Shown: piece by piece, positions 2,750 through 57,977 of the stretch
Layout of the letters: each line of letters begins with the position of its first letter
Numbering within the stretch: position 1 is the first letter of the stretch
From: Macrostomum lignano
Lineage: Eukaryota
Direction: 5' to 3'
Assembly (NCBI GenBank): GCA_002269645.1
Contig: NIVC01001642.1
Location: 1 to 64,000 of the forward strand
Length of the DNA stretch: 64,000 nucleotides
Made by a program: the position numbers and the translations under genes
Notes under the pieces: generated by a model
Database searches by the model: none
Seen by the model: the letters and a program-made list of their open reading frames with translations, nothing else
Told to the model about the DNA's origin: nothing

Positions 2750-4435
2750 GGAGGGGACAAGGCTGAGGGGGGATAAGGGTGAGACGGAGACAAGGATGAG
2801 AGGGAGACAAGGATGAGAGGGAGACAATGTAGATAGGGAGACAATGATGAGAGTGAGACAATGATGAGAGGGAGAAAATGATGAGATGGAGACAAAGGTG
2901 AGAGCGAGACAAGGATGAGAGGGGGTGAGAGGGAGACAAGGATGAGAAAGAGACAGGGGAGACAAGGATGAGAAGGAGACAATGATGACAGGGAAAAAAT
3001 GTAGATAGGGAGTCAATGATGAGAGGGAGACAAGGGAGAGAAGGAGACAAGGGTGAGAGGGAGACAAGGGTGAGAGGGAGACAAGGGTGAGAGGGAGACA
3101 AGGATGAGAGGGAGACAAGGATTAGAGGGAGACAAGGTAGAGAGGGGGACAAGGATGAGAGGGGGGTGAGAGGGAGACAAGGATGAGAGGGGGTGAGAGG
3201 GAGACAAGGATGAGAAAGAGACAGGGGAGACAAAGATGAGAGGGAGACAATGATGAGAGGGAGACAATGTAGATAGGGAGTCAATGATGAGAGGGAGACA
3301 AGGGAGAGAGGGAGACAAGGGTGAGAGGGAGACAAGGGTGAGAGGGAGACAAGGGTGAGAGGGAGACAAGGATGAGAGGGAGACAAGGATGAGAGGGAGA
3401 CAAGGAAGAAAGGGGGACAAGATGAGAGGGAGACAAGGTAGAGAGGGGGACAAGGGTGAGAGGGAGACAAGGGTGAGAGGGAGACAAGGGTGAGAGGGAG
3501 ACAAGGGTGAGAGGGAGACAAGGGTGAGAGGGAGACAAGGGTGAGAGGGAGACAAGGATTAGAGGGAGACAAGGTAGAGAGGGGACAAGGGTGAGAGGGA
3601 GACAAGGGTGAGAGGGAGACAAGGATGCTTGAGAGACAAGGGTGAGAGGGAGACAAGGTAGAAAGGGGGACAAGATGAGAGGGAGACAAGGTAGAGAGGG
3701 GGAAAAGGGTGAGAGGGAGACAAGGGTGAGAGGGAGACAAGGGTGAGAGGGAGACAAGGATTAGAGAGAGACAAGGTAGAAAGGGGGACAAGATGAGAGG
3801 GAGACAACGATGAGAGGGAGACAAGGTAGAGAGGGGGACAAGGGTGAGAGGGAGACAAGGGTGAGAGGGAGACAAGGATGCTTGAGAGACAAGGGTGAGA
3901 GGCAGACAGGAGAGACAGGGGGAGATGGAGACAAGGGTGAGAGGGAGACTAGGATGAGAGGGGGTGAGAGGGAGACAAGGATGAGAAAGAGACAGGGGAG
4001 AAAAGGATGAGAGGGAGACAATGATGCTTGAGAGACAAGGGTGAGAGGCAGACAGGAGAGACAGGGGGAGAGGGAGACAAGGATGAGTGGGAGACAGGAG
4101 AGACAGGGTGAGAGGCAGACAGGAGAGACAGGGGGAGAGGGAGACAAGGGTGAGAGGGAGACAAGGATGCTTGAGAGACAAGGGTGAGAGGCAGACATGA
4201 GAGACAGGGGGAGATGGAGACAAGGGTGAGAGGGAGACTAGGATGAGAGGGGGTGAGAGGGAGACAAGGATGAGAAAGAGACAGGGGAGACAAGGATGAG
4301 AAAGAGACAGGGGAGACAAGGATGAGAGGGAGACAATGATGCTTGAGAGACAAGGGTGAGAGGCAGACAGGAGAGACAGGGGGAGAGGGAGACAAGGATG
4401 AGTGGGAGACAGGAGAGACAGGGTGAGAGGGAGAA
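2750..4435. repeat. GA-rich satellite with a ~17-bp unit (GAGACAAGGGTGAGAGG) in STK32 intron 2
   Basis: A 17-bp period is visible at 3481/3498, with degenerate flanks. It produces the spurious S/P/L/C-rich ORFs at 2533-4555. Confidence 0.95.
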
Positions 4436-5499
4436 TGAGATGTTAGAAGAGTAAAAAAAGGGTGAAACAAGAGAAATAATAGACAAGAAACAGAGCGACG
4501 GGCAGTCTCTATGGGATCGATTAGGAAGGAAGGAAGCAAGCGTTAGCAATGCCAACTTTACAGGCCAACAACAGTCCTAACAAAAATCGCTAGGCAAACA
4601 GAACTTGCCTAACTAAAATCTATCCAATATGCAAGCATAATGACAAAACCTATCGATCGACTGACTACACAATCGAGCAGAGAGGCCCATTCTCCCCTTG
4701 GGGAACTGATAATTAAATGAGTGCATGACAATATAAACCTTCAATTATAACAACGCGTGTCACATGTTTCAGCAATATATAATAAAGGTGACGGCAAAAG
4801 TGAGAATAACAAGAGAAAAGTTGAGCAAAGTTAGATTGACAGGTGGCTGGTTGCACCTGCCAAGAGCGAGATATTCTCATGGGCGGAGCAGAAATCAAAG
4901 GCAGTGAGAGAAAGATGAGCAAATAGGAAATTTGAAGCAACTTTTCTTTCTTGCTTGCTTGCAACTAAATTACAAGCGCCTCTGTAACACAATATAGTGA
5001 TTCTACATTCTAATAGCCCCTAGGAAGCGGAACTAATGGAAGGGCAGATTAGGGGGGGGGGGATGCAGATTAAGGGGCACCGACAAGAGCGCAGGTTGAA
5101 GCACGTTAAGACTGCATGGAGGGCGGATAGGGGATGGATCGAAGCCAATTCTCCAAGTACAGATGGGGGCGGACTTCTGGTGGAAAAGGGGCGGATTAGT
5201 GACATTTGAGTACAGGTTGGGCGGATTAGTGACATTTTGATTTGAGTACAGATAAGAGGAGGTGGATTGGTGGTTGTTTGAGTACAGACAGGCGTATATT
5301 AGTGGTATTTGAGTACCGATTGGGGGTGGGTTAGTGAAATTTGGCTACAGAATGGAGGGGGGCGGATTATTGGCTGTTTAAATAAAGATTAGGATGCGAT
5401 TAGTGGTTGTTTAAGTACAGATTGAAGGGTGAATTAGTAAAATTTAAGTACATATTGGGGGGGGGGGCAGATTGATAACTGTTTAAGTACAGATGTGGC

Positions 5500-7432
5500 G
5501 GATTAAAGGCTGTTTGAGTAGATTGGGGGCGGATTGATGGCTGTTTGAGTAGATTGGGGGGCGGATTGATGGCTGTTTGAGTCGATTGGGGCAGGGGGCG
5601 GATTGATGGCTGTTTGAGTAGATTGGGGCAGGGGGCGGATTGATGGCTGTTTGAGTCGATTGGGGCAGGGGGCGGATTGATGGCTGTTTGAGTAGATTGG
5701 GGCGGATTGATTGCTGTTTGAGTAGATTGGGGCGGATTGATAGCTGTTTGAGTAGATTGGGGGGCGGATTGATGGCTGTTTGAGTAGATTGGGGGGGCGG
5801 ATTGATGGCTGTTAGAGTAGATTGGGGCGGGGGCGGATTGATGGCTGTTTGAGTAGATGGGGGCGGATTGATAGCTGCTTGGGTAGATTGGAGGCGGATT
5901 GATGGCTGTTAGAGTAGATTGGGGCGGGGGGGGCGGATTGATAGCTGTTTGAGTAGATGGGGGCGGATTGATAGCTGCTTGGGTAGATTGGAGGCGGATT
6001 GATGGCTGTTAGAGTAGATTGGGGCGGGGGCGGATTGATGGCTGTTTGAGTAGATTGGGGCGGATTGATAGCTGTTTGAGTAGATTGGGGGGCGGATTGA
6101 TGGCTGTTTGAGTAGATTGGGGGGGCGGATTGATGGCTGTTTGAGTAGATTGGGGCGGGGGGCGGATTGATGACTGTTAGAGTAGATTGGGGCGGGGGGG
6201 CGGATTGATAGCTGTTTGAGTAGATGGGGGCGGATTGATAGCTGCTTGGGTAGATTGGAGGCGGATTGATGGCTGTTAGAGTAGATTGGGGCGGGGGGGG
6301 CGGATTGATAGCTGTTTGAGTAGATGGGGGGCGGATTGATAGCTGCTTGGGTAGATTGGAGGCGGATTGATGGCTGTTAGAGTAGATTGGGGCGGGGGCG
6401 GATTGATGGCTGTTTGAGTAGATTGGGGCGGGGGGCGGATTGATGGCTGTTTGAGTAGATTGGGGCGGGGCGGATTGATGGCTGTTTGAGTAGATGGGGG
6501 GCGGATTGATAGCTGCTTGGGTAGATTGGAGGCGGATTGATGGCTGTTAGAGTAGATTGGGGCGGGGGGCGGATTGATGGCTGTTTGAGTAGATGGGGGG
6601 CGGATTGATGGCTGTTTGAGTAGATTGGGGGCGGATTGATGGCTGTTTGAGTAGATTGGGGCGGGGGGCGGATTGATGGCTGTTTGAGTAGATTGGGGGG
6701 GCGGATTGATGGCTGTTTGAGTAGATTGGGGGCGGATTGATGGCTGTTAGAGTAGATTGGGGCGGGGGGGGCGGATTGATAGCTGTTTGAGTAGATGGGG
6801 GGCGGATTGATAGCTGCTTGGGTAGATTGGAGGCGGATTGATGGCTGTTAGAGTAGATTGGGGCGGGGGCGGATTGATGGCTGTTTGAGTAGATTGGGGC
6901 GGGGGGCGGATTGATGGCTGTTTGAGTAGATTGGGGCGGGGGCGGATTGATGGCTGTTTGAGTAGATGGGGGGCGGATTGATAGCTGCTTGGGTAGATTG
7001 GAGGCGGATTGATGGCTGTTAGAGTAGATTGGGGCGGGGGCGGATTGATGGCTGTTTGAGTAGATGGGGGGCGGATTGATGGCTGTTTGAGTAGATTGGG
7101 GGCGGATTGATGGCTGTTTGAGTAGATTGGGGCGGGGGGCGGATTGATGGCTGTTTGAGTAGATTGGGGGGGCGGATTGATGGCTGTTTGAGTAGATTGG
7201 GGGCGGATTGATGGCTGTTTGAGTAGATTGGGGCGGGGGGCGGATTGATGGCTGTTTGAGTAGATTGGGAGGGGGCGGATTGATGGCTGTTTGAGTAGAT
7301 TGGGGGGGCGGATTGATGGCTGTTTGAGTAGAGTGGGGCGGGGGGCGGATTGATAGCTGCTTGGGTAGATTGGAGGCGGATTGATGGCTGTTTGAGTAGA
7401 GTGGGGCGGGGGGCGGATTGATAGCTGTTTGA
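5500..7432. repeat. G-rich minisatellite with a ~30-36 bp unit (GATTG[G]nCGGATTGATGGCTGTTTGAGTA) in STK32 intron 2
   Basis: Tandem units carry a variable G run, and a recurring variant unit (ATAGCTGCTTGGGTAGATTGGAGG) is present. A degenerate extension runs from about 5150 to 5500. Confidence 0.95.
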
Positions 7433-7454
7433 GCAGAATTCCAAAACGAACTCA

Positions 7455-7844
<390 letters not shown>

Positions 7845-7994
7845 TCAATTAGTGTAATTAAGTAAGGTACTGTAAATAGACGTGTTTGATAGGATTACGC
7901 ATAAGACTAAACTTTTACTAGCTACGAAGAGACTCGAGAATAAAGGGAAGAGAAATAGGAAAGTACAAGACATGAGAGGCCTAACGGGTAGAAG

Positions 7995-8505
7995 ACAACG
8001 GTGAGGGGGAGACAGGCGAGAGGAGACAGGGAAGAGAAAGACAGGGGAGAGGGGCGAGAGGTAGACAGGAGAGAGGAAGATAGGAGAGAGGATGACAGGG
8101 GAGAACGAGAAAGAAGAGGACAGGGCAGAGGGAGATAGGGGTGAGGAAGACAGGGGAAAGGAAGACAGGGGAGAGGTAATGAAAGAGGTAGACAGGAGAG
8201 GGAGACACGGGAGAGTGAGACAGGGGAAAGGGAGACAGGGAAGACAGAGGCAAGGGTGAGGGAGACAGGGGAAGTGACCCAGGGGAGAGGGAGATAGGGA
8301 GATAGGGGAGAGGGAGACAGGGAGAAGGAAATAGGGGAGAGGGAGACAGGGACAGGGAGACAGTGAGAGGGAGACAGGGAGAGGGAGACAGGGAGAGGGA
8401 GACAGGGAGAGGGAGAGGGAGATATGAGAGAGGGAGAGGAAAGAGGGAGACAGGGAGAGGGAGACAGGGAGAGGGAGATATGAGGGAGATAGGGGAGAGG
8501 GAGAC
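7995..8505. repeat. GA-rich degenerate repeat (GGGAGACA-type) in STK32 intron 1
   Basis: Purine-only tract on the + strand with GGGAGACAGGGAGA units. Confidence 0.9.
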
Positions 8506-8577
8506 ATGGGTAATACAAGCCATAGCAGTATTGTATTCTGATTCCACACAGACTGCTGAATAGCAAACTCCTCAAAC

Positions 8578-8674
8578 CTTCTCCATTGCAATCGGCAGAA
8601 CCTGCAGATGTAGTGGCTGCCGCACCAGCAGCTGCGGAAGCATCGCCACTAGCAGAGGCGTGCCCGCTGCCCAT
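8578..8674 (-). CDS. STK32: STK32/YANK-family kinase, exon 1
   Basis: MGSGHASASGDASAAAGAAATTSAGSADCNGE plus G|GTTTGAG. It is 97 nt (phase 1) and joins TG of exon 2 to give ...GE-V-NFNHF, as in STK32B (EEVNFDHF). The N-terminal MG is compatible with myristoylation. Confidence 0.8.
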
Positions 8675-9707
8675 AAAGCACCCAATGGTGGCTGCCTGGT
8701 AGCTGGTTAATGCTTTAATAAAGACAGCGTCACCCTGCTTTGTAAATATGCTGTCATAAATAATAAAAATTAATGATCGATTTAAAGAGTCTTGCACTAA
8801 AATAGTTATCAATTTTTTATGTTTAAATAGTTACATTTGTGTATGACATAAATTACCATATAAGTTAATTTTTATCCTAAATTTACTCAAAAAAGGGAAC
8901 TATATTCTGCTATAGACATTCAAGACTTAAAAAGATTTTAAAGGCTAATAAATATACAAAAAATCTGACATAGCAAGCTGGTTTATTATAGATTTTTTCT
9001 TAATTGATTTCTAAGCTTATCATTTCAACTTACAGATGATGTAATAATTATGAGACAATATATAGATAATATAATAAAGATGCCTAAGTTTATCATACAA
9101 AGCATAAAATTTTTCTAGGAAGTACTGGCCTCTAGGTGATATAATCTATCTCAATATGATTTATATGGCCCAATTTTTCTATCTTAGTGGTCTAGTGTCT
9201 AATAGTTATAAGGATTTACAATATTGCTATAGACTTGTCTAGGCTGCCTTTTAATTTGTAAGGGCTGTCCTAGTCTAAGGCCTTGCTTGACTGCCAGTGG
9301 ATGACACTATTCTAGTGATTAAGACTGTCCTATTATATAATGTCAAGACCTATATGCTAATATGAGGTGTGTCCCAAAAGTTCCTAAAATTTCTATCATT
9401 ACTCGACAATTATTGAGCATATCTTCACATCCTTGGTGTTAAATGAAAGATGAATTTCTCATTAAAATATAGCTATTTGAATCACGTCAATATGTCTAAC
9501 CATCTCTTTGCTACACATAAAAATGTTTGCAAAGGTTGGTACTAGGGTCACACATCCTTAAGAGCCTTTTGAAAAAAAACAATGATATTCATAAAACAGT
9601 GAAGAAAAGAAATATGGGATAATTTAAACAGCAACATTGATTAAATCTCAAGTTAGTCAGCAGTAGGAAAAGTTCAAATGTATATTTACTCATCCAACTC
9701 AGCCTGT

Positions 9708-19913: not shown

Positions 19914-20203
19914 AATAATAATAGCAATAGATTATTACACCTACCCCAGTTGGACCAGATGTGCAACCGACAGCTCAGCCACAGTTATTGCGCGGCGCAT
20001 TTGAAGGCTGCTTTTGGCTGTGTCAGTTCGCACACTCTCAATTACCCCAGCTAATGCCAGTACAGCTGGGTGAACTGCAGCAATGCAGAGTTAAGCAAGT
20101 GTCTTGCTTGCTTAAGGACACAAACTGTTTCAGTGGGATCGAGAATCGAACCCCCAACCTTCAAGTCGCGAGTCCGACGCTCTAACCACTAGGCTACAAT
20201 CCC
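19914..20203 (-). mobile_element. tRNA-derived SINE
   Basis: The minus-strand head has box A (TAGCCTAGTGG) and box B (GGTTCGATTC), and the tail is (TAT)n. Direct repeats TTTTTTGTT at 19905-19913 and 20204-20212 form a TSD. Confidence 0.8.
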
Positions 20204-22883: not shown

Positions 22884-23595
22884 TCTGCAGATCCCCATTA
22901 ACCCATCTGCAGATCCCCATCATTCCATCTGCAGATCCCCACCATTCGATCTGCAGATCCCCACCATTCCATCTGCAGATCCCCACCAACCCATCTGCAG
23001 ATCCCACAAACCCATCTGCAGATCCCCATTAACCCATCTGCAGATCCCCACCAACCCATCTGCAGATCCCCATTAACCCATCTGCAGATCCCCATCATTC
23101 CATCTGCAGATCCCCACCATTCGATCTGCAGATCCCCACCATTCCATCTGCAGATCCCCATTAACCCATCTGCAGATCCCCACCATTCCATCTGCAGATC
23201 CCATTAACCCATCTGCAGATCCCCACCAACCCATCTGCAGATCCCTACTAACCCATCTGCAGATCCCCACCATTCCATCTGCAGATCCCCATTAACCCAT
23301 CTGCAGATCCCCACCATTCCATCTGCAGATCCCCACCATCCCATCTGCAGATCCCCACCATCCCATCTGCAGATCCCCACCATCCCATCTGCAGATCCCC
23401 ACCATCCCATCTGCAGATCCCCACCATCCCATCTGCAGATCCCCACCATCACATCTGCAGATCCCCACCATCCCATCTGCAGATCCCCACCATCCCATCT
23501 GCAGATCCCCACCATCCCATCTGCAGATCCCCACCATCCCATCTGCAGATCCCCACCATCCTATCTTCAGATCCCCACCATCCCGTCTGCAAATC
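22884..23595. repeat. ~21-bp minisatellite (CCATCTGCAGATCCCCACCAT)
   Basis: About 33 copies. It produces the spurious MGWWGSAD ORFs. Confidence 0.97.
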
Positions 23596-23965
23596 CCCAA
23601 TTCCCCGACAAGGACAACTGAAGTTACGTTATTTAAGTTGTCCTTGTTCCCCGACCCCATCCCATTCCATTTTTTATGAAAAAACCTACATAGTGACTGA
23701 AATAGTTTATAAACGCATATACCCATGACTACTAATATAGTTAGTGAATATGTAATTATGTAAACTAATTTATATTGTCATTAAGTTGACTTTAAAAGCA
23801 TTACGATCTGATTTAGATATGATGCTCCCTCCTTTTTGACCACCTGGTAATTAAAAGCATTACTTTATTGCTTATAGTTCACATATTTAATGGGTATGCA
23901 TAAATTTTGTACTTTTTCAAGCAGCAATCCAAATATTATCATTCCTACGATAATTTCCAGAGAAA

Positions 23966-24796
23966 ATGGCTGCTGCAGCTTCCGAATCGTGTGAAACTGA
24001 ACTCCATGATCAAATTAAAAAACTGCGTAATTGGCTGCGGCAGTCAGAAGATGTTCGTGAACACCCTCCTCTGGGGGCATATACAATGTACCCATTTTCG
24101 GATTTGGATTGGGATATGACTTCTGTCGATTGGTTGGAAGCAATTTTGGAATTAGAAAGAGAAGGTTACTACACTTATGATTCCTACCAATGGGTTGACG
24201 TGTCAAAAATATACCACTTCAATGATAAAAACCGAAAAGTAAAACCAGATCCAGCAAGGCGAGTATGGAAGCCTGACAGTTTCCAATACTTAAAAAAGCA
24301 GGTTGATGAACAGAAAGAAATCTCGCCTGTTTTACTATCTCCTTCTGATGAGCATCCGGGACAGTATGATCTAACTGATGGAATCCATAGGATTGCTGCC
24401 GTTCACCATCACGGATATACATCCATTTTAGCTCGGGTGACAAACATTCGATCTCCGGATAGAACAAAAATGCCACCGCTGTTGACTGACCACTATCCAT
24501 TTTGGCTCAATTACTCACACGTGTGCTCAGTGGCGGGTACGATTGGTAGTGAAATTCAGAGTTTTAATAACTCCACATTTCTAGCAAATGAAACAGAAGT
24601 AACTGTTAATGTGTGCAGTCTTTCCTGCGCTAATAAGTTTCAAATTGAGTCGGCTCAAGCTGCGGATAATTATAACTCGTGGAAAGCCAAAAACATTAAA
24701 GGCTCCTTTGAGACGTGCAAAGGGTCTACCGGTGAATTCAGCTGTGATTCTATTGAAGAAGCGGCTAAGTTTCTGGCAGGCAAAATGTGCAAATAA
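23966..24796 (+). CDS. Single-exon ParB/sulfiredoxin-like (ParB N-terminal domain) protein, 276 aa
   Basis: Long non-repetitive ORF. The segment LKKQVDEQKEISPVLL...QYDLTDGIHRIAAVHHHGYTSILARV fits the ParB-N consensus (P-hydrophobic..y.h.DGxHRxxA..lG). A TTTCCAG acceptor lies 5 nt before the ATG. Confidence 0.75.
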   Translation: MAAAASESCETELHDQIKKLRNWLRQSEDVREHPPLGAYTMYPFSDLDWDMTSVDWLEAILELEREGYYTYDSYQWVDVSKIYHFNDKNRKVKPDPARRVWKPDSFQYLKKQVDEQKEISPVLLSPSDEHPGQYDLTDGIHRIAAVHHHGYTSILARVTNIRSPDRTKMPPLLTDHYPFWLNYSHVCSVAGTIGSEIQSFNNSTFLANETEVTVNVCSLSCANKFQIESAQAADNYNSWKAKNIKGSFETCKGSTGEFSCDSIEEAAKFLAGKMCK

Positions 24797-25441
24797 AGTT
24801 TAACTTTAAAACTGCGTAAAAGGTTGTGTAGCAGGTGTAGCTGTGCTTAGTGTTCAATGTTCTATGTTAATGTTGTAGCAGGTATGATTTTACTTATTTG
24901 TTCTGTCTGTCTCTAAGCTATGACTCTTTCTTGGAAAATTCCTAAGTTCACTCGATTTCTTAGAAATCTCGTGGTAGCTGTGAGTGTCTGAGCGGTAAGA
25001 CACTGTCTAATTTCCTAAACTAGTTCGAAAGTATTGTATTGTAAAGTATTGTAATACTTTATTGAAAGTATTAAAAGTAACTCTAAAATGTAGTGTTCTT
25101 CGTTTGTTAGTTATTCTTCTGGCGTCACTGAGAAGCTTCTTGATACTCGTATTGGAAGTCCATAAGGCTCTCTCATTTTAACTGTTTAACTGTATCTATA
25201 CCCATGCTACGCTTTGCAAACTTTTTTACTCCTAACGTAGTAAAAGATAAAAATTAAAGCAACGATCAGCGCTTAGCTATTCACTCAGTCTAAGTATCAC
25301 AATAATAACGTACATGTACGTGTGATAATTAAAGTTCAATTGCGATTTGCAGGATGCATATTGCAATCCCCGTGCAAAATTTAAAAAAAAACTTTCGAGC
25401 AATACACTTTCAAGAAAATATCCCTACCAAAATTGCTACAA

Positions 25442-26391
25442 CAAAACAACAACAACAACAAGAAAATACAGTCACAGTTAGAGCAGGGCGCGTCAGTCGA
25501 TGGCGCGCCGCAGAGCCTGGGAGCGAACAAAGTCAGCTCCGTTGGCAGTGTCGGGCGCCCCAGCGTCGCACAGCAGGCAGTCCACGTATCGACGGGTTCG
25601 GGCCTGACCCCGCCTGAACGGACCCTGCAAGGTAAGCAGCAGGACGTCCTGAACAGGTTGGGGGCAGTAGCCCTCGGCCCGGATCACGTGACCCGCCAGT
25701 TGAGGTCGCCGCCGGCGCAAAATGATGGACGGGCGCTGCAGCTTGGCCCGATCGTACAGGACCTCGATCCCGACGCTCTCGTCAGCTGGAAAGCCGCACG
25801 GAGCAGCCCTGAGTGCGCCGAGTCCAGCTGCCGCTCAAGCGTAGCCGTCAGCGTCCACGTCTCGGCGTTGTAGAGCAGGACGGTTTCGACCCCCGCCTGC
25901 CACAGCCGAGCCCTCTGGCGGTCGGGCAGCGCTTCGGACTGGGGGACGGCTCGGATCGAACGAAAGGCCGCCCAGGCAAGTCCTCTGCGCCGCCGGAGGT
26001 CCTCTTCCACGTGGGGCACCAGACCGCCGAGGTAGGTGAACCGCTGGCAGCGTGCGAGCCTGGTCGTCTGCCCGTCTGCGCCGCGGCACGTCAGGTCCGC
26101 TGGGAATGTCGGCCGGCACAGTCAGCACCTCGGTCTTCAGCGTGTTGACGATCAGACCGACGCTCGATGCCACCTCGACCAGCCTGTCGATCTGGCGCTG
26201 GGCGCCTTCAACGGACGAGGACAGGAGGGCGAGGTCGTCGGCGTAGCCAAGCACGCTTAGGCGCTTTTCGCCGTGGCGGTGACCGATGCGTCTGCGCAGC
26301 AGGAAGCCGTCATCAGCCGAGGGGAGAGCGGTCCGAAGCACCCAGTCCAGAAGCAGCACGAAGAGGAACGGCGCTAGCGTGTTCTGTTCTG
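25442..26391 (-). mobile_element. 5'-truncated RTE-clade LINE (RT C-terminal part)
   Basis: TLAPFLFVLLLDWVLR...GYADDLALL with frameshifts and a (TTG)n tail. A 12-bp TSD AAATTGCTACAA lies at 25430-25441 and 26392-26403. Confidence 0.92.
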
Positions 26392-26674
26392 AAATTGCTA
26401 CAAAAAGGCAATTCAATATTCATATTCAACACGAAGCTTCTAAAAATTTGAGAAACAATTCGCTTGCAAGAATCGCGAGATTTTCGTGGTGTCCAATTGC
26501 AATTCTTGGTAATTGGTTGTCACAAATTATGATGAAACCTTTTTTAAAGCTTATAAGTTATGATCATGCTTTATAATATATATTGAACTCGTTTTCATTA
26601 CATTATATATTATCATTTATGGTAAATGTCAAAAAATTGCGCCAATATGTTGCATGTACACTACAATGAAGAGT

Positions 26675-29673: not shown

Positions 29674-31107
29674 CTAGGATTCCGTGTAAATGCGAAGAAG
29701 AAATTCCAATCGCTTGCCATTCAGCGGCGATTCAGTCTGTGGCACCACCGTGTAATCACCTGGCGGCAGGGACACGCGGAACACTACCGAGCGCTGGTTG
29801 TCTTCGGGGTGTTGAGCCACCTGGTACACGGGTCGCCTCAGACAGTTAGCCCCTTTATAGATGTCAACAGCTTTGACAGAGAATCGTCGCTTTTCTAGCG
29901 GAATGTTGCGCTGCCCCGGCTCTTCCAGACTGATCACAACGGTGGCAACTCCGTCCTGATTGCTTCCATCGCAAAAATTTGTCAGGAACGTGTTGTCCTC
30001 GAAGAATTCGTCAATTTTTTGACCTGGATACCACTCTCCGTAGATGTACTTGCCGTTCCACTCGGCTCCCGTCACGCCGTTGTCCAAATTTCTAGCCAAA
30101 TGCAAAACTGTCAGGAACTCGAAGAACTTCATAAAGTCGGACAGCTCCATCCAGTTCTCACCGTCGTCCTGCTTCACTAATCCAGCTAGCTTCATCTGCT
30201 CGGGCGTCCACCTGGGATCATTGTCGTTCCATTTGCCGCGCCATTCAAATTCGCTTAGCGGCCCCCAGGGATTGCAAATCCGGATCAGATCCACCAGCTT
30301 GCCATTGTGTGGGATCTGCACTGTGCCTGTGACGATGTATTCGTGACCGGACGTCAATCCGAGGCTCTCGAGGTTTTCGCCCAGAATTTCGGTGTGGGTA
30401 GCCGCACCAGCGGACAGTTTTTTTGATAGGCAATACTTAATGTTCTCCAGCACCTTTGCCCCGTCCTCCCGCTTGAATGGGATCAACTCGCACACTCCAC
30501 CAGTGAGGTCGGCCATGGCCTCCAGCTCGAGCCCGCCAATTAGAGACTCATAGCATCCGTGCAGCTTAGCTAGCGCCTTCTCCAACAGGCAGACCCAGTA
30601 CTCGCCCTCGTGCGCCGCGGCGTACACAAGCTGGCCGTCCTTGGTCGGCAGTCTATCGTCCACCATGATCTCCACTTCGCGTCCAAATGGTCGGAAGCGG
30701 AACCGGAAGGCGCCGCAGTAACCTGCACCGCTCAGTGTCTGGTCAGGAAGGATGACCTGGGACAGTAGGTCCGGTCTCTGCGTGATGGCAGCAACAGCAG
30801 CCAAGATCCAGCAGTTCTCCAGTTCGCCTTGATTTATATCAAATCGAGAGAAACCATCTTTGACGAACTCCGGGTCAGCGTCGAGTTCTTTAGGTCGCAG
30901 CCACTTGTAATTGAGCTTCTTGTGAGCATAAGTTAGAGAAGTGTCGTCGGCCGGAAATTCCGGATCTTCAAACAGCCTTTTGCTAGCTCGAAGCTCCCGG
31001 ATTATCTCATTGTTCTTTTCAACGTTCAGAGTTATAAAATTAGTCGTTGACACTCGAAATTGAGAGCAGCTTGCAGTAGAAGGTCTCCAAAACGCCTCTT
31101 GCTGCAT
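29674..31107 (-). CDS. Single-exon calpain (CysPc + domain III, no penta-EF), catalytic triad intact
   Basis: FEDPEFPA, WLRPKE, QGELENCW (Cys), DDRLPT, LLEKALAKLHGCY, GHEY (His) and NPWG (Asn), plus a C-terminal LPPGDYTVVP of domain III. The first ATG is at 31107. Confidence 0.93.
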   Translation of the reverse strand: MQQEAFWRPSTASCSQFRVSTTNFITLNVEKNNEIIRELRASKRLFEDPEFPADDTSLTYAHKKLNYKWLRPKELDADPEFVKDGFSRFDINQGELENCWILAAVAAITQRPDLLSQVILPDQTLSGAGYCGAFRFRFRPFGREVEIMVDDRLPTKDGQLVYAAAHEGEYWVCLLEKALAKLHGCYESLIGGLELEAMADLTGGVCELIPFKREDGAKVLENIKYCLSKKLSAGAATHTEILGENLESLGLTSGHEYIVTGTVQIPHNGKLVDLIRICNPWGPLSEFEWRGKWNDNDPRWTPEQMKLAGLVKQDDGENWMELSDFMKFFEFLTVLHLARNLDNGVTGAEWNGKYIYGEWYPGQKIDEFFEDNTFLTNFCDGSNQDGVATVVISLEEPGQRNIPLEKRRFSVKAVDIYKGANCLRRPVYQVAQHPEDNQRSVVFRVSLPPGDYTVVPQTESPLNGKRLEFLLRIYTES

Positions 31108-31721
31108 GACGTTTGCCAGCAAAACTACTAATAAAATCTGTACAAAGATTAGAAAAAGAGAAGATTATCTCTATTCTCTTTTGAATCAGGGCCGGGTCTT
31201 CTTGAACCCGAGTTCCAAGTTATTTGCACATTTAAATGGGTAAAAAATAGATTTTTCACTGGGAAACCGTATAGTCTATGGAAAAGTCAATCAATTCTAT
31301 GCAGTAGAACACACGTCTAAACCATTTTAAAAATAGCAAAAAACACAAAATATGAACATAAAACAAACGCAGAGCAAATCAAGTTTAGATATTGTGAATT
31401 GATCACATCCCAGATTAATGCGAGTATAGATTTATTGATATTGCAGAATACACCAGGTACAATAGTACGACCTACATTGTATAATTGGCTACATTGTATA
31501 GTTTACCAGCTACGAGTATATCTGTTACTGGATAAATTAGCTCTAATGTTAAAGGGCAACTTTATATTTTAACCTTTGCAATTCACAGACTGTGGAGACT
31601 GTGACAAAAAACGCAGTTTCGAAAAACCTGCCAAACAAACGAAACCGATTTTGATTCTACGAAGTTAGATTGAACGATTTAAACAAAAGGCGTGCATATA
31701 GTCGTGTATAAACAATATGTA

Positions 31722-40966: not shown

Positions 40967-42352
40967 TCACGTGAACACTCGAAGCAAAAACTCCACCCTG
41001 TTGCCTTCAATCAGGGTCTCAATGCGAGGAATGACAACATAATCGCCAGGTCGCAGACTTGCTCTTGAAACAAATTGTCTTTCCAACTCCGTTCCCGTGA
41101 ATCGCATCAAAGGTTCGCCTTCGGGCAACTTTCCCGGATAAATTTCAATGATTTTCTTGGCGAATTCCGAGCCATCAGGGTACAGATGGCGTCGTTCGCC
41201 CTCTTCCAAACTGATAATGACGTACGCCGACCCATCCGGATTTGCTGACGCACCGGAAACGGTAAAGCTGAAGCGGTCGTCATGATAGAACTCATCTGGA
41301 CCCTGGTTCATTGTCCACGCTCCGTAGACCTTCTTGCCAGTCCACTCTGACCCGGTCACGCCGCAGTCTAAATTTCTGGCCAAATGAAGAATTTGAACGG
41401 ACTCAAACATTCGCACGAAATCAGACAACTCAATTGTAGTTTCACCTTCTGTAGCATTGGCTTGCAACTGGTACCAGTCGGATGACAAGCGGGTATATTC
41501 TTGATCTAGCAAAGCTCTTCTATAATCCAAAATCTTCACAACATCGATTGAACTGCCGTCCCGTGGAACCTGAGCAGTGCCGCTAATAATATAATGGCCT
41601 CCTGGCGGCAGATCGGGCAATTTTTTCATGCATTTTTCAGCGTCATCGCTGCTTTCATTGCGTGCACAGAACGCTTCAACGATCAGTTCCCGTTTTAAAG
41701 CTGACTGCAATATTTTCAGTAAATCGTCCACCTTGATTTCTCTTACATAGATCTCTTCGCAAACTCCACCAGTGAGTAGTGGCAATAGCTCTAACGATGC
41801 GCAAGTTGGTACATCTTCGTATGAGCCGAACAGCTTAGCAAAAGCCTTCTCGAGTAGGCACAGCCAGAACTGGCCACGGTGAGTTCCGGAAAACGCTAGT
41901 TCCCCGTTTATAGTAGGGAGCCGATCGTCAATAGTGAGCTCAAATTCTTGGCCAAATTGGCGAAAGATGAAGCGAACAGAGCCGTCATAGTTCTTGCCGT
42001 GCAGTGTCTGACCCGGTGGAATAACGCTGTGTAAGAGGTCCTGCCGATTTCCGATTTGGGCTAGACATAGTAATAAGCAATAGTTGGCACTTTGACCTCT
42101 GACGTTCGCGTTGAATCCCGACCCGACGTTAACGTCTCCGACCTCGAACAGTAGTGCTGTGCCATTTCCGGTCATTTCGTGCGGCCTTAGCCAGACTAAA
42201 GGTTTAGAATGGTATCTTCCTGATGTCGAATGGGCCTGATGCTCATCATCCTGTCCAGCATGTACAGAACTGTAATCGGCTGGAAATTCCGAATCTTTAA
42301 GCGGCTTTTCTCCGGGTTTCAGCTTTTTAAACGCTTTGAAAAGTCTCTTCAT
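40967..42352 (-). CDS. Single-exon calpain-like protein, predicted catalytically inactive
   Basis: Collinear paralog of 29674-31107 (SEFPADY, WLRPHE, DDRLPT, LLEKAFAKLFGSY, HLARNLD.GVTG.EW). QGELENCW becomes RGQSANYC, GHEY becomes GGHY and CNPWG becomes LDYRR. Confidence 0.88.
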   Translation of the reverse strand: MKRLFKAFKKLKPGEKPLKDSEFPADYSSVHAGQDDEHQAHSTSGRYHSKPLVWLRPHEMTGNGTALLFEVGDVNVGSGFNANVRGQSANYCLLLCLAQIGNRQDLLHSVIPPGQTLHGKNYDGSVRFIFRQFGQEFELTIDDRLPTINGELAFSGTHRGQFWLCLLEKAFAKLFGSYEDVPTCASLELLPLLTGGVCEEIYVREIKVDDLLKILQSALKRELIVEAFCARNESSDDAEKCMKKLPDLPPGGHYIISGTAQVPRDGSSIDVVKILDYRRALLDQEYTRLSSDWYQLQANATEGETTIELSDFVRMFESVQILHLARNLDCGVTGSEWTGKKVYGAWTMNQGPDEFYHDDRFSFTVSGASANPDGSAYVIISLEEGERRHLYPDGSEFAKKIIEIYPGKLPEGEPLMRFTGTELERQFVSRASLRPGDYVVIPRIETLIEGNRVEFLLRVFT

Positions 42353-46112: not shown

Positions 46113-51765
<5,653 letters not shown>

Positions 51766-53152: not shown

Positions 53153-56088
53153 TATATTATACAAAGTATAGGGACGCAAAGATTATGGTAGGCGTCTTGC
53201 GCGCACGCGCTCGCAGAAGAGACGAGAAAGACAGTTTTTGACAGATTGTGGGGTCAGGCTTGTAGGTCAGACTCTAGCGTGGCGGTCAGCGTGGTGGTCC
53301 GGCCTTGGCCCCGTCGGAGACGCTCGGTTGGCTGATGCAGCAGGGTGAGCGCCAGCGGGTTTTGCTCCCCTCTGCCATAGCTGAGGAAGCAGTGGCCGAC
53401 GAGCATTAGCCGGCGCCGCTGGAGGGTGGCACTGAGCTGAGGCACGCGGGCTCTCGCCATCAGCAGGTCCGTCGGCAGCCGCTCGGGGTAATGGATGCCA
53501 AGGGCGAACCGCAGCAGCGATCGGTAGGCAGCGTCCAGGGCTCGAGACCTCGAGTCGGTCATTGGCACTGCCTCCAGTCCGTACAGGAAGATTGGCTCTA
53601 CGGCAGCGCGGAACAGGCGCATCTTCAGGTCGTCGTTGGCAGCTGAGCTGAAGACCTCCCTGAGGAGATGAGCCGCACGCCAGGCCTGTGACCTCCGGTC
53701 AGCGATGATGGAGTCAGGGCTCATCACGAGGGAGCACAGGTACCGGAAGTCTCTGCAGACTGAAATATGACTTGCCCATCTGGTAGGGTCAGGATTGGTG
53801 CTGCATCGGTGCCCACGTGCAGCACCTTCGTCTTGCGTGCGTTGATTTGGAGTCGGACTCGGGCGCTCTCCTCATAGAGTCTCGAGAGCGCTCTCTGGGC
53901 GGCAGTCGGACTGCGGCACAGCAGGGCGATGTCGTCGGCGTACGCGAGGGCGGGCAAAGGGGCAGCACCGCGGCAGCTCCGTCGTGACGCCAGCAGGTAA
54001 CTGTCCTCTGTGAGGCTTCGGCGCAGCACGTAGTCGACGACAAGGATGAAGAGCAGAGGGGCCAACGTGTCACCATGGAGGACTCCGGAGCTGGTGCAGA
54101 AGTCCTCAGTTGGACCATCGCTGGTTTAGACAAAGGCTTTGCTGTTGTTGTAGAGGTCCATCACTGCAGAGATAAGAGCCGGGGGGGACACGCCATAGTG
54201 CTCGAGCAGCCACGCGATCGCGCGCCGGCACACTGAGTAAAAAGCTTTGCGGAAGTCCACAAAGACAATTGACGCAGCTCTTTGGTGAGTTTTACAGGCC
54301 TCGACGACTGCTCGAAGGGCTGCAATCTGCTCTGTTGTCGAGCGGCCGGGCCTGAAGCCACTTTGGAGGCTCAGGATCATTTGTTTGAGGCCAGACAGCA
54401 GCCGATTACGCAGTATAGCATTGAGCAGCTTAGCCAGAGTGCATTCCAGAGCAACGTCGCGTTGGTTGTCCAGACTGGTGGATGCGCCCTTCTTGGGGAT
54501 GGAGACGATCTTAAAGGTGCGCCAGTTGTCAGCAGCAGTAGCATCTGGGTTGCCTCCAAGCGGACAGTGCTTGTTGAGCACAGTCGTGATGTCCTGTGTC
54601 AGCTCCGGCAGCTTGAGCACCCTGGGTGGAATGCCATCTACTCCGGCGGCAGCGTCGGGGCGCATGGTCTTGAGCACTCGGTTCACCAAGTAGGCAGTCA
54701 GCGGGCCGGAGTTGAAAGTCGAGGGCTCAGCCGGGGTAAAGTTTTCGATCGGCAGCAAAGCAGCAGAGAGCGGTGGAGCGTTGAGCTCATTGTGGTAGTG
54801 AGTGGCCAGCAGGGCTTTGCGATTGTGTATGGACTCAGCACCTACAGCGGCATTGGCCCTCTGCTTCCTGCCAGTCAGGCGGTTGATGGCGCGCCAGGCC
54901 GCTGTGTGCCGGCAGTTGTCTGTCGCTAGTTGAATTTCAGCAACAGCCTCCTGGACAAAGGCTTCGGTCCTCCGGGCATGCGTGTCGCGTAGTTGGGCCC
55001 GGGCTGTTTCAGCCTGCTCACTGTCTTGGCCAAAGACTGCGGTTGTTCTTTGCACGTCGCGCCTAGCGATGGAGATCTCCTCGTCGGAGTCCCAGGCGGC
55101 TTTTGGCTGGTGCGGTGTTCGTTTTGGTAGGATCGAGGCAGCTTTCTCAACAGCTCTGGTGAAGGCGTCCGCCGATTCATTCAGGGCCGGAGTAGCATTT
55201 TGCAGTTTTTCAATGAACGCACTGTGCGTGTCTGGGTTTCTCAGATCTGCTCAGAGGGGGGTGCGGTGGGCCAGCCTTGAACTTTTTCCATCGGCAGTCG
55301 ATGTCGCAGGCCAGCAGAGAATGGTCGGACCTCACGCATCTGGGGCGGATTTGACCACTTTGCGCAGTCGAGAACTGATGGCCGAAGGGCACAAAATCCA
55401 GTCCAGCCTGGTGGTCCGTCCATTTGGGCCGAAGAAGGTGGGCAGCTTGTTGTACCGCTGCCGCATGACACCATTGGCTGCAATCAGGTCTTGAGAGTGA
55501 ATGAAAGTTGACAGGAAGTCCGAGTTGGTGTTGGTGGAGCCGCAGTTTTTCTTCACCAGGCGGCCATCAGGGGACAGTGGCGCGTTGAAGTCTCCAGCCA
55601 CAAAAAGCAGGTCGCGACCAGGGACCGAGTCGATGAGCAATCCCAGGTGGTCATACATTGACTCAGTCTCGGTAGGGTCAGTAGCTGTGCGTGGGGCTGT
55701 GGGGGCGTAGACGCAGATTACATGAAGGCGCCTGTCCTTCTTGGCAAAAGAGGTAATGTCAAGGCGGTCGGTTGGGAAGCTGGCATTCAGAAGGGCCCTT
55801 GAGGCACTAGGTGACAGCAGAAACCCGATGCCTCCAGAGCCCTGGGCTGAGGCTGGGGCGGCTCGGAACTGCCAGCCAAGGCCTGGATCAGCGCACTCTT
55901 CGGTGCTCCTGCGGTGTTCTTGGACAGCCAGAATGGAGATGTTCATGCTCTTTGCCAGCTTGGTTAGCTCGTGCAGTCTCCAGGGGGCAGTGAGCGTTCG
56001 TGCGTTGAAGGTAGCAAGTCTTGTGCAGTTATCAAGCTGGTTTTGACTTTCTTTGGTTGTCTCAATTGTTCTGCTAGCTGGTGCAGTT
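53153..56088 (-). mobile_element. Near-full-length RTE-clade LINE (APE endonuclease + RT), frameshifted
   Basis: LATFNARTL, ISILAVQEHR, CVYAPT, AGDFNA, LDWILCP, QSGFRPGRST, VDFRKAF and AYADDIALL, split across several frames. A possible TSD CTTTAATTA lies at 53144-53152 and 56089-56097. Confidence 0.93.
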
Positions 56089-56683
56089 CTTTAATTAAGT
56101 CTATTTAAATTACGATTTTGAAAAAATTTAGAAAAGCTGGAGTTCTAAAATTCAACTTAATTAGCCATACCCATACGGCAATTCTACGCAGATGATAAAT
56201 AAGAGTACATGCAAGTCAGAGTTGGTACAAGGACTACACTACATAAATACGTTACTTTAGTCGTCCTTGAGTTGGTATAGACTCCTGGTTCTATTCTGTG
56301 ATTCTGTGGTCGCAGTCATTTGGTCTTGTGCGTGCACGAAAATTGGTGAGCGCGATTCACACCCGTACCGGTACGCCAAGCGCACTCCTAGGCTGATTTC
56401 TCTCTGGGGTTTACGAGATTAAAAACCTGTGAATAATCAGTTTAAGCTGTGATCGGATATCACCTACGTCTACATGAACACTGTCAAAGTTTTTAAAGCC
56501 GCGCATTCTCGTCTGCAAGTCTGTTGACAAGATTTTAAAGTCCTCTGACTTTCAGTACACCGAAATCTATGCAGTATACGTACAATTGTACATGTTGTTA
56601 CGCAATACGTTGCCTATAAATAACTGAAAGTTTAAATATCAACTACACTGGACTTCGTGCACTTGGCTTACTAATACATAAAC

Positions 56684-57977
56684 ATGTCTGTTGCGTATTC
56701 CGACATAAAACTCTATTTGCTTAGTGGCGCATACGACGTCCCTGTGTCTTTAACAACAACTAAGGAGAAGAATAATTTCAAAAGCAAGGTTCGGCAAAAG
56801 GCGCGCAACTTCAAGTACGAGGGCCAGCAGCTGTTCTATCAGCTCTCAGCTCGGGATGATAATCAGAAGAAGCGCCATCGGTCAAGGGAGCGTCGCCTGG
56901 AGGTTGAAGAACAAGAAGAACGGAGTCGATTAATTCAAGAGTATCACACCTCTGCGACTGGAGGAGCTCATCAGGGGATAAAGTCCACCCTATCGAAGCT
57001 GCAGGGACGATTTCATTGGGACGGCATGACGAAATCTGTGCAAGATTACGTTCAGAAGTGCGCCGTCTGCCAGCGCAACAACAAGAGGGCCGTGGCGAAC
57101 GAACCCCAGTTGACGCCAATTTTGATTCCTTCGATGGCCGAACGAGTATTCGGTTTTGTCTGCGTTGACTACGTCAGGTTCGAGCCATCTTCGAAAGGTG
57201 ATTGTTTAATCGATTAATAGCTTTTGTGGCTACGTGTATCAAATCTAAGTAGCATACTCTCATTCATTTTAATTCATTTTTATTGACAAGAGACGAACCT
57301 CTGCTTATCACCCCCAGGTTAGTAAAGTTAATATTTTTTTGCCTTCCATGCTCTCAGTAATAAGTCTTAATTCGAATAAGTTCATATTCGATATTAAAGA
57401 ACTGACAATGCTCTTTCAGACCAACGGTCAGTGCGAGCGCCTCAAACAGAGCTTAGTCGCAGCTCTGCGCAAAATGTGCGACCAGGACTCTGACTCTGCG
57501 GCATGGGATGATTATGTCGATGGCGCAGTTCTGGCGTACAACAGTCGCGTGCACTCGACAACTGGCGTCTCGCCTTACAAGGCCGTGTTCGGCAACGAAC
57601 CACGACTTCCCCATGACAGCATCGGACCAGCAGACGCTGCCATGGTCGGTGACGTCACGATTCGTCATGTAGAGAGAAAGTCCGAAGCACGTGGGCGGAC
57701 CATTGAGTTGATGCGTCGACGCATCCGTCGGGCGCAGCAAGCTATGCAGCAGTACCATCAGCAGCGTCTGGCGTCTGCCAGCAGCCTCAGCTTCAAAGTC
57801 GGAGACAAGGTGCTGCTGCGGAACTTCGACCGTGACGATCGGAAAGGCGGCAAATTGAAGACACCATGGTGCGCCAAGGTTTACACGGTCGAACGTGTCC
57901 TAAGCAACAACCTGTACCGACTCGAGGGGAGATCTACAGCGATCAATGGCCGCCACCTGAAAAAATACCACGAATAG
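56684..57977 (+). mobile_element. Intron-containing gypsy-like integrase (Ginger1/GIN-type), internally deleted. Exon pieces: 56684-57197, ~57282-57317, 57420-57977
   Basis: HHCC zinc finger (YH...GAHQG...CAVCQ), first Asp (VCVDY), a mini-exon IDKRRTSAYHPQ|GTTAGT, then TTTCAG|TNGQCERL, YNSRVHSTTGVSPY and FKVGDKVLL...KLKTPW. The segment with the second catalytic Asp is absent. No TIRs were found. Confidence 0.78.

Follow-up and report, generated by a model that had tools for sequence, protein, structure and literature searches.

How does the genome of a flatworm come to carry an uninterrupted gene for a protein whose active-site loop is of a prokaryote or virus type? The question is raised by a 64-kb stretch of DNA (the window), which comprises positions 1 to 64,000 of the 71-kb contig NIVC01001642.1 in GCA_002269645.1, the Macrostomum lignano assembly Mlig_3_7 (PMC5730564, PMC10733133). 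On its forward strand, an open reading frame (ORF) at 23966-24796 runs intact from ATG to TAA over 276 codons. The original prediction read this ORF as a single-exon gene of the ParB-N/sulfiredoxin fold and as a candidate for horizontal acquisition and domestication in an animal genome, and our analysis supports that reading overall. The fold itself is known; what is new is a variant at the family level. With moderate confidence, we propose that the ORF is a real, unannotated protein-coding gene of M. lignano with a phage-derived core, which would go back to one old transfer and belong to a fast-evolving family.

Membership in the ParB/sulfiredoxin (Srx) superfamily is confirmed by profile and by structure comparison. 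Queried as a single sequence, the window protein stays below threshold for Pfam ParB_N (17 bits, cut-off 26.3) and TIGR00180 (26 bits, cut-off 58) and meets Caulobacter ParB at E=0.011; in scans of Pfam and NCBIfam, no curated family model captures the family. A profile built from the family and compared with the PDB matches SbnI at E=6.6e-7 and ParB at 7e-5, with Helicobacter and Caulobacter ParB and Noc also among the matches, which span residues 7-81 only of SbnI. AlphaFold run from the single sequence gave a useless model, with a predicted local distance difference test (pLDDT) value of 35. The alignment-based model has a predicted template-modelling (pTM) score of 0.62 and residues ~10-195 mostly at pLDDT >80, and Foldseek relates it at probability 1.0 to ParB, KorB, Noc, Srx, SbnI and SerK. 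Further Foldseek matches are pNOB8 ParB-N, PadC, human and plant sulfiredoxin and, in BFVD, giant-virus ParB/Srx proteins and many proteins from phages. The superposition on SbnI and SerK has a root mean square deviation of 1.8-2.1 Å over 86 columns (1.8 Å and 23% identity for SbnI).

A 13-sequence alignment of the family (A1) conserves the motifs EYRWV, VWKP, DGIHR and P.LPP, and its invariant or near-invariant positions are V77, W101, K102, Y134, D138, G139, I140, H141, R142, A145, L155, A156 and P170. The loop from D138 to R142 is followed by IAA, which completes the DGIHRIAA string that had been noted in place of the GGCHR of sulfiredoxin. G139, H141 and R142 are invariant in 13/13 members, as is Ile140, which sits at the position of the Srx Cys and the ParB Glu; the loop aligns with AGERR of Caulobacter ParB and with DGVHR of SbnI. 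The extensions on either side of the core, described as unknown in the original prediction, turned out to be common to the animal-type relatives and absent from phage proteins, whose matches start only at window residue ~59-64. The N-terminal extension is modelled as a helix and short strands packed on the core, and the C-terminal extension as a long helix that leads into a poorly modelled, Cys-rich beta/alpha module.

On profile comparison, the closest family is an unnamed clade of phage proteins, in keeping with the prokaryote or virus type ascribed to the motif. Animal profile A1 and phage profile A5 align in hhalign with a probability of 99.7% (E=7.3e-26), the 145 aligned columns corresponding to window residues ~59-204; pairwise phmmer scores reach up to 46 bits, and over the core, identity to the nearest phage relative is ~30%. 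The clade shows the motifs G[FY]Y.Y.E[FY]..VP, VW[KNH]P and DGIHR[YI][NA]A[SV]. The likeness to members such as UViG_3300020220_002267, 3300009545_000018 and P0006 covers a core of ~110-145 residues and these motifs, and AT-rich members carry the exact DGIHRIAA string. The phage proteins differ in that they lack counterparts of residues 1-63 and 174-276, and in many of them the domain is joined to a 2H phosphoesterase, a NUDIX domain or a long stretch of uncharacterised sequence. Some are standalone proteins of ~200-240 amino acids; in three (L017, L018 and L038), a 2H phosphoesterase (LigT/AKAP7-like; PF13563 1.5e-11; weak Acb1) stands at the N terminus and the exact DGIHRIAA string is present, and a fourth (L025) is a 1,072-residue protein that contains a NUDIX domain. 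With GC contents from 29 to 65%, the phage clade is far more diverse than the animal one in composition and architecture.

The bacterial-type relative P0006 lies on a gene-dense contig with co-oriented genes and adjoins a Flp-type pilin gene. With P0006 as the confirmation sequence, 6 loci were recovered on IMG/VR contigs (55-448 kb) and 19 on metagenome contigs; with the window protein in that role, the IMG/VR and JGI metagenome scans returned nothing. GTDB genomes yielded no family member with either confirmation sequence, and neither protein had a tblastn match among 50,697 phage genomes. The phage loci are gene-dense, with a few PHROG hits and a LAGLIDADG endonuclease, and at one of them (L016, IMGVR_UViG_3300028920_000027, 182 kb) the homolog is embedded among 36 tRNA genes within 10 kb. 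tRNA arrays of this kind occur in huge phages. At four loci (L014, L015, L024 and L028), an ORF of 576-763 amino acids ends exactly at the start of the ParB-like gene, one of these ORFs having a weak PARP-like match.

In a neighbour-joining tree, the animal sequences are monophyletic in 168/200 bootstraps (84%) and the phage and bacterial sequences in 141/200, the animal clade being sister to the phage clade and not nested inside it. From this topology we infer direction and age: one old transfer of a phage or bacterial ParB-like domain into an animal or a wider eukaryotic lineage is most likely. Animal-type sequences with 25-40% identity to the window protein have the extensions in common and group in one clade, which makes the proposed transfer an old one that is not confined to M. 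lignano.

These relatives come from an exhaustive phmmer search of 1.84 billion representative proteins, which gave 10 hits, 9 of them credible; the tenth (P0009), a 715-residue tandem-repeat protein with none of the family motifs, was discarded. Apart from P0006, the credible relatives (P0001-P0005, P0007, P0008 and P0010; 8/9) are single-exon genes on eukaryote- or animal-type contigs. They and their cluster mates are unnamed and stem solely from Logan, ENA and JGI assemblies, and none of the relatives among the 1.84 billion representatives is a named NCBI or UniRef protein, which speaks against broad, vertically inherited metazoan orthologs. The animal-type relatives, 25-40% identical to the window protein, have the same N-terminal region, core and C-terminal module, and intact ORFs of ~220-290 amino acids persist across them. 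In every homolog, the composition of the coding sequence (CDS) follows that of its own flanks.

The homolog contigs are eukaryotic, with sparse genes. On the 454-kb contig of L003 (ERZ25071859 ctg32546) there are (CA)n repeats, fragments of DENN and of a helicase that look like exons, and a PCMT whose nearest relative is human PCMT1; the PCMT ORF is uninterrupted and lies ~2 kb upstream of the homolog. The 78-kb contig of L001 and L007 carries pogo-type transposase, PHD and patatin fragments, and that of L008 a reverse-transcriptase (RT) tail of long interspersed nuclear element (LINE) type. The L003 copy is broken at a single point by ~0.7 kb of inserted DNA, whose long terminal inverted repeats are nearly perfect and which resembles a miniature inverted-repeat transposable element; an intron at this place was rejected in favour of this single transposon-like insertion. 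In the L001/L007 organism, two copies that are 96% identical lie 28 kb apart inside a segmental duplication of at least 8-10 kb. Among the genes that neighbour the homologs, there were no named cluster mates.

Within the window, the reading frame itself is beyond chance and very unlikely to be random. In 300 simulated 10-kb sequences with local dinucleotide content and 300 with the ORF's own content, the longest ATG-initiated ORFs peaked at 203 and 253 amino acids, and 276 was reached in 0/600. As predicted, the gene is an uninterrupted ORF, with an AG at 23959-23960 that follows a pyrimidine-rich stretch and is separated from the ATG by 5 nucleotides. In M. lignano, 38.8% of genes undergo spliced-leader (SL) trans-splicing and genes average 4.9 introns (PMC5730564), which makes the AG plausible as an acceptor and a single-exon gene atypical for the species. 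YAG sites of a similar kind precede 6/7 eukaryote-type homologs; as a conserved signal, the site was discounted because the bacterial homolog carries one too. The ORF has a GC content of 42% and 37% at third codon positions (GC3), the corresponding GC and GC3 values of the neighbouring ORFs all being higher: 61/70% for F-box, 60/70% for the DUF7041 ORF and 53/63% and 48/49% for the calpains. The remark that the gene is more AT-rich than the F-box and HSPA12 exons thus holds for the F-box ORF; it is a weak argument for foreign origin, since the CDS tracks its flanks in every homolog. The flanks of the window gene, at 31-34% GC, are poorer in GC than the ORF.

Another contig in the M. lignano assembly, NIVC01004424.1, is a syntenic paralog of the window contig and carries the gene at the same position. 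Over ~21 kb, the two agree at 92-100% in 500-nucleotide bins outside the gene block and one further bin (83%, beside an unaligned gap), and both encode an identical 477-residue calpain. The immediate flanks of the block are 96.8% identical; the CDS copies are 78.3% identical, and 57% at the amino-acid level. Paralogs of the neopolyploid M. lignano have a published divergence of 2.2% genome-wide and 1.1% in CDS (PMC10733133); the gene is thus ~20 times as diverged as the published CDS average, and the block ~7 times as diverged as its flanks. Across 236 in-frame codons, the synonymous divergence (dS) is 0.216 and the nonsynonymous divergence (dN) 0.289, and silent sites have diverged more than the flanks (Fisher p=5e-9). 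By region, the core (64-173) has dS 0.35, dN 0.31 and dN/dS 0.88, not different from 1, and the C-terminal extension (174-276) has dS 0.09, dN 0.28 and dN/dS 3.1 (binomial p=0.01, uncorrected), with all six of its aligned Cys kept in both copies. The transition-to-transversion count in the block is 103:111, and the two copies do not differ in GC, on which grounds an origin by editing or hypermutation was rejected. Candidate origins of the block are allelic lineages of great age and conversion from a diverged paralog, perhaps combined with positive selection on the C-terminal module.

Might the ORF be a decaying relic, acquired or inherited long ago, non-functional now and merely without a stop codon yet in the window copy? 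We consider this rather unlikely. The site has no annotated gene, dN/dS is ~1.3 overall, and the paralog has one frameshift and has lost W101-K102-P103, the AG acceptor and AATAAA; the copy in another organism is interrupted once by a transposon-like insertion. Against decay stand the window copy, which retains all family-invariant residues, the 276-codon frame, the acceptor-like site and the poly(A) signal; the six Cys and the D-G-x-H-R residues, which survive 43% amino-acid divergence between the copies; and the intact ORFs of relatives as distant as 25-40% identity. Neutral decay after the recent genome duplication, moreover, cannot yield a block so much more diverged than its flanks. A more elaborate account has an animal lineage capture a nucleotide-dependent ParB/Srx enzyme of phage conflict type and turn it to use in its own genetic conflicts, be it as a sensor or effector of innate immunity or in a selfish, toxin-antidote-like locus. 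The strongly diverged M. lignano copies would then be haplotypes or paralogs of ancient origin, maintained by balancing or diversifying selection whose main target is the Cys-rich recognition module at the C terminus; we offer this as speculation that is unlikely to hold.

Vertical inheritance, in which an ancient eukaryotic ParB/Srx gene such as a sulfiredoxin offshoot diverged fast with no horizontal transfer, would sit well with an animal clade that is sister to the phage clade, not nested in it, with a composition that fully matches the host, and with evolution so fast (57% identity within flanks at 97%) that orthologs could go undetected. We judge it decidedly improbable all the same: family profiles reach the phage clade, SbnI and ParB, and sulfiredoxin by structure only (E~1e-3); the search hits include no named eukaryotic protein; the phage clade has much the greater spread of GC content and architectures; and all copies are intronless, against the genome average of 4.9 introns per gene. 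Still less probable is that the gene is cargo of a eukaryotic transposon or endogenous viral element and not a host gene. Repeats surround it, several organisms have more than one copy, the hyperdivergent block is roughly the size of a transcript, and one homolog lies ~0.65 kb from a pogo-type transposase. That transposase, beside homolog P0014, was nonetheless rejected as a carrier: it belongs to an unrelated, later insertion of ~9 kb that the sister copy lacks, and the duplicated unit is at least 8-10 kb. In the window, there is one gene copy in 64 kb, no terminal inverted or long terminal repeats were found around the ORF, and no viral hallmark genes lie near it, the neighbouring ORFs being repeats, calpain and F-box. 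Finally, bacterial, phage or food-organism DNA mis-joined to flatworm sequence, an idea to which a phage-like, unannotated and intronless gene with GC3 under that of neighbouring ORFs might lend itself, is extremely improbable given a diverged copy in syntenic position on a further contig of the assembly with the same 22-bp satellite, the same downstream sequence and 96.8% identical flanks, no N runs in the window, a nearest phage relative of only ~30% identity over the core, and the empty searches of phage and GTDB genomes.

Several observations weigh against the favored explanation of a gene with a phage-derived core. The assembly annotation calls no gene at the ORF site. Between the M. lignano copies, dN/dS is 1.34 and does not differ from 1, and between two paralogs of another organism it is about 2, from 13 differences only; neither ratio demonstrates recent purifying selection. 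Of the claim that the gene is a candidate for acquisition and domestication, the prokaryote or virus type is backed by the phage sister clade, and domestication is unproven on these two counts. The tree was built by neighbour joining from 95 core columns and separates animals and phages from SbnI and ParB in 115/200 bootstraps only. Unannotated copies in other genomes escape protein searches, and a word-indexed protein search, which found 0 members with the protein alone and 1 with the family alignment, is uninformative in its negatives because it missed family members known to be in the collection. Nucleotide binding is predicted from homology.

Where the protein stands among characterised relatives bears on what it might do. 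The free L-serine kinases SbnI and SerK (PDB 5ujd, 6nr6, 5x0k) provide the best profile match to a solved structure and the tightest superposition, and share the D-G-x-H-R loop. Their catalytic residues are a Glu upstream of the core (LHE in SbnI) and the Asp of DGxHR. The Asp is conserved here as Asp138, whereas the SbnI Glu aligns with Arg99, a position that is acidic in about half of the family, and the C-terminal helical domain of SbnI/SerK has no counterpart in the window protein. All family scores against the NCBIfam SbnI and SerK models are far under the cut-offs: NF033589 matches 5/13 members (best E=1.4e-6) and NF053625 2/13, and the window protein has no match at E<=10. The ParB CTPases Spo0J, Noc and KorB (PDB 6t1f, 7bm8, 4umk) share the N-domain fold and the GxxR loop, and their QPRR box aligns with the PARR segment that precedes WKP in the window protein; here, however, Ile140 replaces the catalytic Glu of GERR(xRA) and His141 the first Arg. 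Pfam and NCBIfam scans found no helix-turn-helix (HTH) family in the window protein, which has no ParA partner in its eukaryotic, single-gene setting.

Sulfiredoxin is, to our knowledge, the only well-known animal member of the superfamily. The human (1xw4) and Arabidopsis (6ky4) proteins have the same fold, with Foldseek template-modelling scores of 0.55-0.66 normalised to Srx, and the same H-R after the catalytic position, but the Cys of GGCHR is Ile in DGIHR, there is no match at the sequence level, and the Srx chains among the Foldseek hits measure 89-121 amino acids as against 276 with two extra modules. Lacking the sulfiredoxin Cys, the catalytic Glu and HTH of ParB and the catalytic Glu of SerK/SbnI, the window protein represents a new family within the fold, probably one of NTP-dependent phosphotransferases or nucleases. 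The fusion pattern of the phage clade matches that of the DdrB-like ParB domains in the "polyvalent proteins" of phages, which occur alone or fused to effectors, 2H and others, and for which a part in conflicts has been proposed, in sensing or degrading NTPs or in nicking DNA (Iyer et al. 2017, PMC5512222). Assignment of the phage clade to the DdrB-like domains was unsupported, A1 and A5 scoring a probability of 0.3-0.7% against P1 DdrB (AAQ13996.1) in hhalign, a comparison of limited sensitivity with a single-sequence template. For Tox-ParB and Tox-ParBL1, which have the motif [ST]...[NT][RT][RT] and a toxin-immunity context (PMC3482391), the comparison covers the published motif, from which DGIHR differs. 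PADLOC returned no match, and PHROGs gave marginal ParB-like matches only.

A working model for the proposed phage-derived gene can be put together from these comparisons. The family is small, unnamed and fast-evolving, and its single-exon genes lie on animal-type contigs. Their central domain (~64-173) is predicted to bind nucleotides and would come from a clade otherwise present in large bacteriophages and on one bacterial contig; the N-terminal helical extension and the Cys-containing C-terminal module would have been gained after transfer. By homology, the G139-x-H141-R142 loop and K102, the inferred phosphate-contacting Lys, may hold the NTP phosphates, and D138 may help in catalysis or metal binding. 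Superfamily activities described so far are those of phosphotransferases, NTPases and NTP-regulated nucleases (PMC3482391, PMC5512222), and the protein could be an NTP-dependent phosphotransferase, an NTPase or a nuclease; the 2H and NUDIX fusions of its phage relatives point to nucleotide-derived substrates or nucleic-acid ends. The variable C-terminal module might serve target recognition. Rapid turnover, manifest in tandem or paralogous copies, one of them transposon-broken and one frameshifted, and in dN/dS >=1, suggests a role of the family in genetic conflict, as a defence or a selfish element, rather than in housekeeping.

If the proposal is true, this gene represents a second, independent animal lineage of the ParB/Srx fold, one with a phage-type active site. 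No database has a name for the protein, and its closest relatives, phage proteins, are joined to 2H phosphoesterase and NUDIX domains, which act on nucleotides; it would thus be a candidate for the reuse, by an animal, of a phage enzyme of counter-defence type. The locus also stands out locally for its divergence, whether old or accelerated, in the genome of a neopolyploid model organism, and loci of this sort can inform on subgenome history and selection.

Table 1. Positions of the gene, its parts and its closest surroundings in the window (strand "." where none applies)
Feature	Positions	Strand	Evidence or remark
Complete single-exon CDS, ParB/Srx-fold protein	23966..24796	+	ORF list, chance test, homologs, structure model
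N-terminal extension, residues 1-63	23966..24154	+	Alignment A1; AlphaFold2 pLDDT 70-90; only in animal-type family
ParB/Srx-fold core, residues 64-173	24155..24484	+	Homologous to phage/bacterial clade, SbnI/SerK, ParB, Srx
W101-K102-P103, near-invariant family motif (VWKP)	24266..24274	+	Alignments; partly common to phage clade (VW[KNH]P)
D138-G139-I140-H141-R142, active-site loop of the fold	24377..24391	+	Alignments
C-terminal extension, residues 174-276	24485..24793	+	Alignment, AlphaFold2 model, paralog comparison
Pyrimidine tract with terminal AG, candidate splice acceptor (cis or SL trans)	23941..23960	+	Sequence
AATAAA polyadenylation-signal consensus overlapping the stop codon	24792..24797	+	Sequence; candidate signal, lost in paralogous copy
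Hyperdivergent ~1-kb block, CDS and ~85 nucleotides on each side	23881..24880	.	74-82% identity to paralogous contig
22-bp tandem satellite TCTGCAGATCCCCACCATCCCA, ~33 copies, 91% matches	22884-23599		Directly upstream of gene
Reverse-transcriptase fragment	25835-26416		Downstream of gene

The surroundings of the gene are those of a host genome, and the placement among host repeats in the original prediction agrees with the satellite and the RT fragment of Table 1; the satellite recurs in the paralogous contig in another copy number. The window calpain is 100% identical to a protein deposited for contig NIVC01001642.1; its nearest named relatives are calpains of M. lignano (51% and 40% identity), followed by those of tapeworms. 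Two calpain ORFs, at 29674-31122 (-) and 40967-42352 (-), lie 10 kb apart and have Peptidase_C2 and Calpain_III and no EF-hand region; the paralogous contig has a fully identical (100%) version of the first, and uninterrupted calpain ORFs of this length are unusual where genes average ~5 introns. The exons at 48048-49231 (+) labelled HSPA12 in the original prediction had no Pfam hit at E<=0.01, which leaves that label unconfirmed.

Elsewhere in the window, 53254-55946 (-) is a non-LTR (long terminal repeat) retrotransposon remnant with Exo_endo_phos and RVT_1 ORFs, which adjoins a fragment of an LTR-retrotransposon integrase (Integrase_H2C2) at 56684-57977 (+); the retrotransposon ORFs of 53254-57977 have ~58% GC against an intergenic background of 34%. 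In the L001/L007 organism, the ~9-kb insertion by P0014 holds a 288-residue ORF (L001 6067-6936, -) with a PHD finger and a weak match to YopJ-type acetyltransferases. At 20134-20203 (-), a tRNA-like Rfam match of 32.6 bits, just over the gathering score and with no ARAGORN call, may be a tRNA-derived short interspersed nuclear element or a pseudogene. The region 3001-9000 differs strongly in composition between its strands (GC skew up to 0.78, AT skew up to 0.68), a sign of long simple repeats rich in purines, and contains overlapping long spurious ORFs on the minus strand. A (CTGT)n-type microsatellite at 50686-51093 reads as a 135-residue "LSVC" repeat ORF.

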